Source: Lepidodermella squamata (taxonomy: Eukaryota > Animalia > Gastrotricha). From it: a stretch of 64,000 bases of DNA. The notes beneath the pieces are model-generated. The model was not told the DNA's origin, searched no databases, and saw nothing but the letters and a program-made list of their open reading frames with translations. Below are positions 58,588 to 64,000 of the stretch, piece after piece. Location of the stretch: assembly GCA_047495785.1 (NCBI GenBank), contig JBLDXI010000024.1, positions 1,612,001 to 1,676,000 on the forward strand. The letters are read 5' to 3'. A program made the position numbers and the translations under genes. Position 1 is the first letter of the stretch, and the number at the start of each line of letters is the position of its first letter.

Positions 58588-61240
58588 ATGATTTTAGGCT
58601 TCGTAATGTTGCAATCGATCTATTCGGCTACCTTGGCCATAAAACCTTACACATTGACCGTAATGACGATTATTCAGGAGTCCCCAAGCCGCCCTCAAAA
58701 TGGCAAAACATGCCGAGCAGCTTCCCGTCTAGTGGCTGATGTCATCAACAATCGTTCAGATATCCTACCCGATTACCAAATCGAACTCAAATTCGAGGAG
58801 GAAGAATTAGGCACGGCACCTGCGCGGCTAGTCACATCATTCAGCGAAATCTTCGGGCTACCAGCTTCGAATACTTCAAAGATCAAATCACCCTTAATCG
58901 TAGGCCCGTTCGTGTCAACTGGTTGCAAAGCCATGGGCGCTATTTTGCACCATCTTAATTTTGTCGCAATTAGCATTAATTGCGCGGCTACGGCTTTGAC
59001 CGAACATGCGCTGTACCCAAATTTGTACCTCATGTTCAACGCTGGAAACTTACCGGCAGCGGTTGTTGAATTTGTGGTCGATCAAGGTAATAATTTCACT
59101 AAAAAACTAATTTTAAGTTAATTAAAATTAAAATTTCAAATATAAATTTTAAATTTTTAAATTTCTAGAAGTGAGATTTTAATTTTAATTTTTTGTTAGG
59201 TATTTTCCATTTTTTGCAAAATTGCAAAGTTTTAAAAATCAAATTCAAGGCAAAATTCACAAAATTCGATTTATTTTGAGATGGACTATCCCGAAGCAAT
59301 TTTAAAAAAATTTGAAGAAAGAGATGAGCTCTTTAATAAAAATTCGTTATTTTTTCCTGCTTTCTCAAACAGGACATTGGAGACGAATGGCGATTTTGAC
59401 CAGTGCTACGAACTTGAACGACTACTACACCGCCCTAAAGGTTCAAAAGCTGGCAAATGCTGCCAATGTCTCTGTGCCTTGGTTCAACGTTGTCGTTGAA
59501 CTCGACGATGAAATAATCGATTCTTTGAAATCAAGCGATTCAAGGATAATTTTGATTTACATCGGAACGGAACGCGTTACTTGGAAATTTTTATGCCTAA
59601 CCTATCAGCACGGTATTACTGGACCGAGGTACATTTTCATGATTAACGAAGCAACTTACAGCGACCCTCGAAACATCCCTGAATCGTCGCTATCTGGCTG
59701 TAGTAGAGACGAATTGATAGAACAAGTTAAATATTCTGTATGGATAGGAGGCCGGCCGACAATAGACGACAACTTGATGTCGGAAATCGGCGAAAATGTC
59801 ACTATTTTTCAGAAAACTCTCGACAATAACTATCTTAACCATTCGATTCCGGGCGATTATCAAAATCGATTCCTTTGCCACGACGCCATGCTTCGCGGAC
59901 TAATGTCACTCGATAGGGCTGATCGAAATTTGAAATTACAAAATTTAACATTGAAAGACTACGCCACATTTCCGAGAGAAGTCATGCTTATCGTCAACAA
60001 ATCAGTATTGGAATCTGATGTAGCAGGATTAGGCCGATTGGCTCGAATGCAATACGACGAGTTAGGCCGAGATTCGGAGAATTTCGTGGCAATGTCGTAT
60101 TGGACCCCTGCAAATGCTATGAAGATGGTTTGGCTGCCAGAAAGTACGAAAATCTACCTTAATAGTAGTCAAATGCTTCGAAATATTACGAAATTTACGT
60201 GGACGGGCTGGGACGGAAAGCCGCCAAGAGATGGGCCTATCTTCATTCGTGAATACAGCGATGTTAGTGATATAGTCTTCGAAACTATATCTGTCCTAGT
60301 CGCAATTTCCTCATTCATCCAAATAGGACTTACAATTGTATTTATCGCCCTGAGATCCGAATTATCGGCTAATAATTCCTTTCCTGTGAGCAAAGTCGTA
60401 GGGTTCCTAGGCTGTATCGCTTCCAATACATCAGCTTTCATCTGGGCCTATAGAATTGATGGCAAAGATATTCATTTAGGCGAGATATTGAGCTCCTTAC
60501 GCATCGGGCTCTTAGTTATAGGGTTCAGCTTCGCAAACGGGGTCATTTCACTTTATCCTATTATTCTATACCGATTAGGACACGTTGCCTACCTCTCCTC
60601 TGTGAAATCTGTGGGAATATTGGCCTATGCTGTACCGAAGATGTACGGCATGATGGATCAGGTAGCCCGAGCTAGAACGATAGGATTGAAAGCTGGACTC
60701 CGGGGCATCTCCAAAGTCTCACAGAAAGCGGACCATTACACAGCGATTTCAGCCATTATTTTTGTTGGATTAAATATCGCAATTTTAATCGGTTGGTTAC
60801 TCGGCGATTCCAGAATCTGTTCGTTGGAGATTGTTAAGGCTATGAGTGGGTACTCTCCCGTGACCGATGTCTATTTAAGGACATTCGCTTTAAATTGCGG
60901 ATCCGAGTATCAATTCGCTTGGGTCACGACGATATGCAGCATTCAGATCGTTGTTTTCCTTATTGGGAGTTTACATTTTTTGCGATTCAAGAGAAAGCCG
61001 ATGCTGCGGCACAGTTATGGCGAATTTTTCTACTCAGTTTCGTCTCTTCTCAATTGTTCCACATTATTATTCTGCGCGATTCTAGCGCTTTTGGTCGCGA
61101 AAGATCAAACGGCCCAACGAACTATTTTGGCGTTTCTGTTGCTGACTTTGTCAATATCTACGGCTTTTCTATGGACCCATCCGCATCGAAAAGAAATTCG
61201 GAAAATTTTCCATCAAATCAAGAATAAGTTTTTGAAGTAA
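58588..61240 (+). CDS. Class C GPCR, GABA-B-receptor-like, 2 exons (intron 59087-59372)
   Basis: Signal peptide, Venus flytrap domain (INNRSDILPDYQI, LYPNLY, GHWRRMAIL, SDSRIIL, LCLTYQHGITGPRY), WDGKPPRD directly before the 7TM region, and no Cys-rich domain. Confidence 0.88.
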
Positions 61241-61257
61241 AAATGGTTTATTTTTGT

Positions 61258-64000
61258 CTAAAAAGCTTCATAAAGGTGATTGATAATGGGTAGATTTGAA
61301 GATTTGTTAGTACGTTGAACGGCCTGCTGCATGGCGTAGACAAATTTGGGCGACGCGCTTGAAATAACGTTGACATTACGAGCATTCCCATTCCGCTTGA
61401 TGATTCGCGTCAAAATCGCATCGAAATTCGGCCAGCCGAAGTGGCAACGAGCCCGCAGCCGCGTGAAAGCGTTTTTCGTGAAAATGCTGTCAGCTCGAAT
61501 AGCTTCCTGGTGTAAGACCATGAGTCGCAGGTCGTAGTCGGCCGCAGGTTGTGCGTAGAACATTTCGAAATTAACGAAGTTACCAAAGTCGACACGCTCG
61601 AGTGGTTCGATGACCTCGCTTTCGAGCCACTCTGTATCGCGATTTGCGATTACGATGACGTAGACCTTGAGACACTGAAATGGGAGATGGCCATCGGTGT
61701 GGCGCGCTTTGGTGATTTCGAAACGGACACGCTTGAGTAGAGACGCGAAGGGCGACGAGCAGATACCCTCCGCAAAGAGAACTGCTACGTCACATTGGTG
61801 CCAGGATTCACAGGCAACACCCGAAAACGGACCTAAAATTAATATAAAATATTAAATTTAATTTAATTAATTTAATTAAAATTTAAAATATTAAATTCAA
61901 CTGAGAGCCATGTGATCGAAAAGAAGGGCAAAAGAGATAGGGGCAAAAATCACACAAGAAATTGAAATGGAAATTCGATATCCTGGTATAAATCTCATCG
62001 GCGACTCCGGGTGTCCATGTTTGGTGTCCCTCAAAACGCCTCTGAGTGATCCTTTGAGCGAAGCTCAGCGTCGATTCCAGGTCGCGTTCATTAGCATTCG
62101 AATTTTCAAGTATTCTATGTGCCTGTTGTGTGCATCATAACATTGCAACAACACTTAACTGATGAAAACTGGCTACCCCAAGAGAAAGACGGTTCCCATC
62201 GTTTTTCCCACTAGCGCTTAAAGGTAGTGTATAGTAGGCTTTGCTCGTCGCGTTAACTAGTCGAGTTGTTCGATGACATTTTGATGAAATTGATTAGAGT
62301 CAAGCTCGATTTCAATCAACTTTATATGAAGACGAACATCAGACGAACAAGTGCCTGCTCAAACTTAGTGCGGTTCAAACGAAAAAGTGTCTTGGCAGGA
62401 ATTAGCGATTTTCTAGCCCTGTTGCGTAATCGATTTTGGGCAAAAATCTATTAATTTTATGAAAATTTCGCCAAAATATATATAAATCTATGTCCTGCTC
62501 GGGGCAGGACATAGATTTTATTTTATTTTGGCCATATTTTGTCGCTTTCAGCCAAATTTTATTAAAATTTGACAAAAAATTGTCCTAATAGAGGTCAAAC
62601 AGGAAATTTAGATAACTTTTAATAAATTGGACGTCGATTTGGTCCAAAAATTATCGAATCTTAAATATTAAATAAAAATTTACCGAAAAACGGTAAAATT
62701 TAAATATTGTTTAGCTCAAAACGACAGAATTTATTTAATTTCGGCTTTTAATAAAAACATTTACTTCGATCACATGGCTCTGAACATTCATTTTTTTAAT
62801 TTAATTTTTTTTTTATAAAAATCACCTTCGATTCGCACAACAGGTTCAGCTTTCGAAGCGACAAAATGTTGGCTCCAAGGTCCGACCGAAATTGCGTGTA
62901 AGGTTAGGAAAGGTTCTTCTGGCGTTGAAGTCAGCGAATAAGGGTGATAGTCGCTGCAGTTGAAATCTGGCGAGCAAATTTGAACGTATTGCCCAGGTTT
63001 GTAGCTCATCGCCGTCGGTTTCTCGAGTTCGACTCGCAAAACTTCGGATGGCAGAATGTTTCGCGAAACGGCCTTGACATTGGAAAATCGATGCCGTAGG
63101 CAGAAAATTCTGTCGACGGCAAGCGTTAAAATCGACGCTGCGAGAAATGAGAAATGAGCGGCAAGCAATTGTTGTCTCGAGTAGCTGAGAACATGAAGCC
63201 CATGAAAAATCGCCAAGTTGGAAATCACAACAATTTCGGTTAGATTGAACGAATTTTTGGCAGAAGTCACGTTGAAAAGCGCAAAATAACAGCAAGAAAG
63301 GGCGAATCGCCATGTAACGGCACCATCGTCGTACTTTTGCAGAATGTAGCTGAGAAGAACGGCTAAAATCAACCAGGCGTGACAATGGATCAAGTTTTTT
63401 CGGAATGTCCCAAGCGAGGAAAACGGGAAAAAATATCTAGCGGTCGTATTCCGTAATTTCGACAGGAAAAATCGACAATTTGCTAGAATTAGAGTGCCGA
63501 AGGTCAAGCTGGATAAATTCAAGGTGGTTTGGCTAATGGAATTGAAGGTGACCGGGAACAACTCGAGGAAAATCAAAACAAAGCAAAAATTCGCGAAGAC
63601 GAGCGACCAGAAAAATTGGCGTTGAATCGAGAAAAATGTTGCCGCAAATCTATCTCCGTAATCTTCGTTCTCGCCAAGTATCAATCGATCTACAACTTCA
63701 GGCGCTTGGTCGCTGATTGGCGACGGTAAAATCGTAATCGGAGAGGGCGGTTCCAACTTTTGAGCGAAAATTCGGTCGAAATTCGCCTCGAAAATAGGCC
63801 AGAATTGCGGGAATGAAATTGAGAACGCAGTGTTTTTCAAAGTTGGAACTTGGCTGATTAATTGCTCGAAAAATTGACACATCGCCTTGTTATCGACTGA
63901 ATTCGGCGTGAGGGAGAAAACAAGCGCGGCTATTTCGTCATAGCTCAACATTCGGTCTTGGTTAGAATCGTTAAACATGAAGCTGCCCGATATTTGCTCT
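61258..64000 (-). CDS. DUOX: Dual oxidase (DUOX)-like protein, C-terminal part, degenerate catalytic motifs; exons >64000-62826 and 61832-61258
   Basis: EF-hand DSNQDRMLSYDE and FAD region YKPGQYVQI...YHPYSLTSTPEE..LTLHAISVGPWS. IEG|GPF spans intron 61833-62825. DYDLR, FTRLRARCHFGWPNF and terminal HLYEAF (cf. DUOX HHYENF). Confidence 0.85.
62484..62518. repeat. 15-bp perfect hairpin in the DUOX-like intron
   Basis: AAATCTATGTCCTGC-TCGGG-GCAGGACATAGATTT, with weaker inverted similarity in the flanks. Confidence 0.85.

Follow-up and report, generated by a model that had tools for sequence, protein, structure and literature searches.

A candidate pseudoenzyme of the dual oxidase family in the gastrotrich Lepidodermella squamata

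The NOX and dual oxidase (DUOX) proteins are usually treated as having the production of reactive oxygen species (ROS) as their only job. Pseudoenzymes such as the pseudokinases and the iRhoms show that a fold can be kept while the catalytic residues are lost, and that such proteins can be retained for long periods beside active paralogues. In the library of papers searched, neither a pseudo-NOX nor a pseudo-DUOX is described. Here we describe a candidate, which could be likened to pseudokinases and iRhoms by analogy, its fold being a different one. The 3′ part of its gene lies at the end of a stretch of 64,000 nucleotides of the L. squamata genome (contig C24:1612001-1676000), which we call the window, and the 5′ part lies just beyond. 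An earlier note on the window had proposed a DUOX homologue that is retained but no longer produces ROS. Our analysis supports that proposal in part; we give a probability of about 0.6 to the reading that the gene encodes a retained non-oxidase protein, a DUOX-derived pseudoenzyme, and we shall refer to it as the dead copy.

The closest described proteins are the canonical DUOX enzymes, represented by human DUOX1 (7d3e/7d3f) and by two genes of the same genome, on contigs C55 and C29. Like these, the dead copy has an N-terminal transmembrane (TM) helix termed TM0, a PH-like domain, an EF-hand region, a six-helix membrane domain, and sub-domains for flavin adenine dinucleotide (FAD) and for reduced nicotinamide adenine dinucleotide phosphate (NADPH). 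It shares their C-terminal Y-E-x-F sequence, and it is nested phylogenetically with the DUOX proteins of its lineage. Unlike them it has no peroxidase-homology domain, three of its four haem-ligating histidines are replaced, its NADPH motifs are changed, its first EF-hand is degenerate, its extracellular loops are shortened and it evolves 4-6 times faster. NOX5 resembles the dead copy in having an EF-hand region before the NOX core and no peroxidase domain, and is its second-best fold match, but NOX5 is without TM0 and the PH-like domain and is catalytically intact, and the trees put the dead copy with DUOX. The dead copy is thus a DUOX by descent and architecture, yet it fails to present a peroxidase domain, the haem ligands or the NADPH motifs, and is therefore not to be classed among the dual oxidase enzymes.

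The gene and its altered oxidase motifs

Read from the sequence, the gene is encoded on the minus strand, as are all its features given below, and comprises four exons with a total of 879 codons, of which exons C and D fall within the window. The 5′ part was taken from the continuation of the contig (L002, where coordinate x corresponds to position 63000 + x of the window). Exon A runs from the ATG at L002 1995 to 1387 (203 codons) and exon B from L002 1331 to 1049 (94 codons plus 1 base), both in open frame and separated by intron 1 of 55 nt; intron 2, of 50 nt, separates exon B from exon C. Exon C (62826..63998, 391 codons) carries the second EF-hand loop, six TM helices of the ferric-reductase type and the FAD sub-domain. 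It is followed by intron 3 (61833..62825, 993 nt, phase 1) and by exon D (61258..61832, 191 codons plus the TAG at 61258-61260), which encodes the NADPH-binding sub-domain. All three introns are of the GT-AG type. The split codons, for Glu and Gly, are restored in frame, and the junction across intron 3 reads ...VVRIE-G-PFSGV.... Thus the description of two open exons in the window with an in-frame splice between them is borne out, as is the claim that DUOX-type sequence can be aligned to the last residues, HLYEAF-stop corresponding to canonical HYYETF. Searches, alignments, folds and trees of the spliced model were run exon by exon, and the genome was searched as an assembly of 121 Mb in 151 contigs, in which the dead copy is single.

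A search against sequences of solved structures gave human DUOX1 as the best match (E 1.6e-14), and the AF2 model of exon C, with a mean confidence (pLDDT) of 79 and six TM helices, matched the fold of DUOX1 best (7d3f, E 3.5e-12) and that of NOX5 second. Within this fold the haem sites are altered. We aligned 34 sequences, comprising exon C, a metagenomic relative (P0001, described below), the two canonical DUOX proteins of the genome and 30 DUOX/NOX proteins. The four haem-ligand columns are occupied by His in 30-32 of the 32 canonical sequences and correspond to R200, Y218, E255 and H266 in the dead copy, so that one of four ligands is kept, that in the outer column of TM5, and three are replaced. 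TM3 (63334..63423, residues 193-222) reads FRK...SY, with R200 and Y218 in the haem columns, and its only histidines, H205 and H207, are non-canonical. TM5 (63187..63243, residues 253-271) reads LTEI...FHGLH; E255 stands in the inner column, and the only histidines are the retained H266 and the nearby H269. In NOX2 the haem ligands are H101/H115 and H209/H222, pairs of histidines 13-14 residues apart that are needed for two bis-His haems (PMC3591440). No His pair with that spacing is possible in either TM3 or TM5 of the dead copy under any placement of gaps. The loss of haem histidines that the earlier note had read by eye, leaving a distal HGLH, was found in each of three independent alignments, and alignment together with structure prediction did not restore four histidines in haem geometry.

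The two halves of the dehydrogenase domain have fared differently. In the FAD sub-domain the motif HPYSLTS (62926..62946; canonical HPFTLTS) persists, as had been noted, together with GPWS, and Pfam recognizes FAD_binding_8 (PF08022) at 40.6 bits, which points to a preserved FAD sub-domain. In exon D, which is 32-34% identical to the canonical paralogues, NAD_binding_6 (PF08030) is matched marginally, at 23.6 bits vs a cut-off of 22.2. Both changes quoted in the earlier note are present in its alignment: the NADPH pyrophosphate loop, canonically GAGIGVTPF, is the degenerate AEGICSSPF (61747..61773), and FTCGP of the nicotinamide site is replaced by ISSASP (61348..61365). The C-terminal aromatic Phe is kept. 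With three haem histidines, the NADPH loop and the CGP motif lost, the chain NADPH → FAD → haem → haem → O2 should therefore be unable to run in the known way.

The N-terminal part of the gene settles a further point. At the start of exon A a hydrophobic helix, with KTRKR after it, aligns with TM0 of canonical DUOX, and the remainder aligns with the DUOX PH-like domain, with DUOX-wide R, L and F columns kept. Its model is a TM helix with a PH-like sandwich, for which the best structural match is DUOX1 (root-mean-square deviation 2.2 Å over 135 columns, with a weak E of 0.036), with PH and PTB domains of the ordinary kind ranking next. The frame is closed by a TGA 9 nt ahead of the ATG, and no AG falls within that interval. 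A search of the genome for An_peroxidase (PF03098) gave matches on C29 and C55 and none on C24. We conclude that there is no peroxidase domain, because the open reading frame (ORF) begins at TM0 with an in-frame stop upstream, the upstream neighbour is a gene of the cyclase family, and C24 holds no An_peroxidase match. The suggestion that the protein might serve as a membrane anchor for a peroxidase-like domain therefore fails; the sequence beyond position 64000 provided exons A and B and a start at TM0 instead. The extracellular loops following TM1 and TM3 are shortened by ~18 and ~30 residues compared with canonical DUOX, and this fits the loss of the peroxidase domain that they contact in DUOX1.

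The reported persistence of the EF-hand holds for one loop of the two. The loop of EF-hand 2, DSNQDRMLSYDE (63934..63969, residues 11-22 of exon C), aligns with the canonical loops DSDGDGNLSYEE and DTNGDGQLSYDE and keeps all the side-chain ligand positions, with Gly6 replaced by Arg; a Pfam scan of exon C gave no EF-hand match for this loop. The loop of EF-hand 1, DDDDDGFIRVQS, encoded by exon B outside the window, is degenerate, positions 9 and 12 being occupied by R and S, and scores 18.6 bits, under the Pfam cut-off of 25.

Origin of the gene and a metagenomic relative

The dead copy has complete paralogues in the same genome. Our search for a canonical DUOX found two, at C55:474001-484000 (locus L011) and C29:1745001-1755000 (locus L012), each with a peroxidase domain, an EF-hand pair, the four histidines, GAGIGVTPF and FTCGP. 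Both are nearly intronless: one exon for the peroxidase domain is followed by a single ORF (1226 and 1204 codons). The genome has one DuoxA gene, and there is therefore no dedicated second maturation factor.

When exon C was compared by HMMER with 1.84 billion representative proteins there were 864 matches at E <= 1e-3, none below 1e-30. The best, P0001 (E 1.2e-24, 35% identity), stands apart, the remaining matches being ordinary DUOX/NOX. It derives from the ENA metagenome assemblies ERZ27332993, ERZ23486787 and ERZ23486764 (loci L020-L022). Scans of Joint Genome Institute (JGI) metagenome contigs with an alignment and with P0001 revealed no relative, and a word search with P0001 returned P0001 itself only, its length window being blind to proteins of ~880 amino acids from the 391-residue exon.

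P0001 resembles the dead copy closely in what it has lost. Its locus is likewise without a peroxidase domain, it has EF-hand remnants and the same classes of loss, it has an intron that agrees with intron 2 in phase and approximately in position, and a PH-like ORF at the locus matches exon A (E 1e-6) and not the canonical DUOX of its own species (E 0.8). Its NADPH loop is FGYSICATPF, sharing Ile-Cys with that of the dead copy, CGP has become SA(S/P)P in the two (FTSAPP in P0001), and both end in YEAF. The membrane domain of P0001 is without haem histidines, and no membrane-domain His is common to the two proteins. Comparison of GYSICATPF with AEGICSSPF leaves no NADPH-loop glycine common to both, and the two proteins share none of the haem columns and no part of the CGP motif. 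There are also differences. In P0001 both EF-hand loops are dead, that of EF-hand 2 not being conserved, the FAD motif is HPSS, no TM0 is seen in the first ORF, the FAD and NADPH parts are not separated by an intron, and the NADPH sub-domain has a deletion of ~20 residues.

A canonical DUOX is also present in the same metagenome sample, and its neighbours are arranged as on C55 (DUOX-patatin-amidase). The second organism, a distant relative, therefore possesses both kinds of gene as well. Between the two organisms the canonical DUOX proteins are 53.6% identical, the patatins 57.8% and the amidases 63.6%; the dead copies are 30-32% identical.

Maximum-likelihood trees were calculated for the exon C and exon D regions separately, using LG+C20 with posterior mean site frequencies (PMSF). 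The two dead copies join with support of 100/99 in the exon C tree and 99/98 in the exon D tree, and the pair is sister to, or lies inside, the clade of the lineage's own canonical DUOX (99/96 and 100/96). The duplication that gave the C55 and C29 genes is younger than the split from the metagenomic relative. The dead copies sit on long branches, a stem of 2.0 changes per site being followed by a further 1.5-2.3, compared with 0.2-0.4 for the canonical proteins. Yet when either was omitted the other went to the same position (96 and 98 by the approximate likelihood ratio test SH-aLRT), and long-branch attraction is therefore not the cause. An insert in the PH domain is confined to five sequences, namely the two dead copies and the canonical DUOX proteins of the lineage, and the dead copies share the derived residues D194S, P289S, T355S and T376S, the Ile-Cys of the NADPH loop, and GWP. 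The trees and the shared derived residues together place the duplication and the loss of chemistry before the split of the two organisms. Judged from their sequences, both dead copies arose from one old duplication.

Retention of the dead copy and the alternatives

We consider that the dead copy, which would be a third and rapidly evolving paralogue of the canonical DUOX pair, is probably a dead enzyme that has been repurposed and is not in plain decay. The losses are old, and both genes have kept long frames. The ORF of 879 codons is intact with canonical splice sites, and that of the ~30%-identical relative, which has the same losses, is intact as well; in this respect the gene looks retained, as the earlier note had it. 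Frame survival was simulated under neutral substitutions only: 12% of runs kept all four exons open at 0.02 changes per site, <1% did so at 0.05, and no run at 0.1. The two dead copies, both in open frame, are separated by several changes per site. Neutral drift would thus not leave a frame of this length open for such a time.

What has been preserved is also informative. In the FAD sub-domain there are 17 near-invariant columns, of which 12 are kept by each dead copy and 11 by both. The EF-hand and membrane part has 20 such columns, of which the two copies keep eight and six. Four of these are kept by both, R176, R183, P192 and F193, all in the B-loop between TM2 and TM3. In NOX enzymes this loop is the docking site of the dehydrogenase domain. 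The pattern of conservation in these alignments bears the mark of selection that acts on the fold and not on the chemistry.

On this reading the 879 residues would form, in order, TM0, the PH-like domain, the EF-hand pair, the six-helix membrane domain and the FAD and NADPH sub-domains, giving a membrane protein of seven helices that scarcely protrudes outside the cell. Selection would keep the fold, acting most strongly on the B-loop, where the dehydrogenase domain docks, and on the FAD sub-domain, while the cytosolic PH-like, EF-hand and FNR-like domains may be kept for binding and not for catalysis. Possible partners would be FAD, Ca2+ through the second EF-hand, and other proteins. Our best guess is that this is a regulatory or scaffolding membrane protein. 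The earlier proposal of a retained, non-ROS-producing DUOX accordingly survives as regards the dismantled chemistry and the retention of the gene, and is shorn of the peroxidase-domain anchor.

A number of observations weigh against this reading. The branch of the dead copy is 4-6 times longer than those of the canonical proteins, so constraint is weak. By raw score exon D is no closer to P0001 than to canonical DUOX. The clade is known from two members that are too diverged for a meaningful ratio of non-synonymous to synonymous substitution rates (dN/dS), dS being saturated. The three near-identical metagenome variants differ by 3-5 changes per pair, at 8 sites in the 2.2 kb ORF, which is too few for that ratio. 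Finally, the putative loss of haem and NADPH binding is deduced from motifs, and the gene and its splicing are predicted from the DNA sequence.

Could the protein still perform redox chemistry with altered cofactors? It might retain FAD and perhaps one oddly ligated outer haem, and employ another donor or acceptor. The FAD sub-domain is indeed the best-kept part of the protein, with its HPYS and GPWS sequences and conserved columns, the C-terminal aromatic Phe is present, and H266 is left in the outer column of TM5. The multiple alignment moreover places Tyr/His at the outer haem site of the dead copy and His/Tyr at that of P0001. But this reciprocal pairing vanishes in the pairwise alignment and so depends on the alignment, for which reason we have not used it as evidence. 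Nor is there a membrane-domain His or an NADPH-loop glycine common to the two proteins; CGP is lost in both, and the FAD motif of P0001 has changed to HPSS. We regard such a redox protein as unlikely, while finding it the best placed of the alternatives. A related and bolder proposal is that an old DUOX-derived clade was rebuilt as a cofactor-dependent non-oxidase, for example a membrane sensor or regulator of canonical DUOX that binds FAD and Ca2+ or carries a single haem ligated by His and Tyr. This would be the first functional pseudo-NOX/DUOX if true, but we hold it to be something of a long shot.

Ordinary decay would make the dead copy a redundant duplicate on its way to becoming a pseudogene, unexpressed or functionless, with the frame open by chance. 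Its long branches and its missing catalytic motifs are what decay would produce, and there is a probable transposon in intron 3. Decay is however hard to reconcile with losses that are common to a relative of only ~30% identity and hence old, when both copies have long frames and usable splice sites. Simulated neutral substitution closed the frame in >99% of runs at just 0.05 changes per site, and conservation is not uniform but patterned, in the B-loop and the FAD sub-domain. Decay is thus a decidedly improbable account of the gene, and a repurposed non-oxidase protein is the explanation that we prefer. That a proper alignment would restore four haem histidines and reveal a divergent working oxidase is scarcely credible, for although the membrane domain is hard to align (exon C has no Pfam match to Ferric_reduct, PF01794, and the canonical paralogue itself falls just under the cut-off at 27.1 vs 28 bits), the few histidines of TM3 and TM5 cannot provide the required spacing with any gaps and the three alignments agree.

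Surroundings of the gene and what it may mean

The length of intron 3 is due solely to an 878-bp non-coding element inside it (61904..62781, no strand assigned). The element, probably a non-autonomous DNA transposon, is bounded by perfect 17-nt terminal inverted repeats, AGAGCCATGTGATCGAA, contains an internal 37-nt hairpin at 62462-62540, and belongs to a dispersed repeat family, of which other contigs carry at least eight further copies of 85-88% identity. At the other end of exon D, an AATAAA on the minus strand (61247..61252), 6 nt past the stop codon, is a possible poly(A) signal, though it may be there by chance in AT-rich DNA.

Immediately upstream of the dead copy is a gene of the Cyclase (kynurenine-formamidase-like) family, on the minus strand at L002 2651-3843 (C24:1677651-1678843). 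Downstream, a convergent two-exon gene on the plus strand (58588-61240) has a receptor-like product whose membrane region is multi-pass and for which a Pfam search gave no match. Its TAA at 61238-61240 is 17 bp from the TAG of the dead copy, and the 3′ untranslated regions of the two genes must therefore overlap on opposite strands. The receptor-like family is very large, with 1268 first-look candidates in the genome and ~69 full-length matches scored, and its members are often clustered on C24 and C25. The closest paralogue of the neighbour (70% identity), at C24:2118708-2120594, has an in-frame TAG and may be a recent pseudogene. Another paralogue lies beside the C29 DUOX, where ANF_receptor falls just under the Pfam cut-off (24.1 vs 25.4 bits). 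It is 24% identical to the neighbour of the dead copy (E 4e-32); we considered synteny between the two and attribute the coincidence to chance, given 1268 candidates.

For the present this is a case confined to an obscure lineage, and a lead rather than a result. Nevertheless, a dead copy that has been kept since before two distant species split suggests that the DUOX scaffold, that is TM0, the PH-like domain, the EF-hands and a membrane domain docked to an FNR-like domain, may be useful without electron transfer. It would also provide a natural 'catalytically dead' control for the assembly, trafficking and Ca2+ sensing of DUOX.

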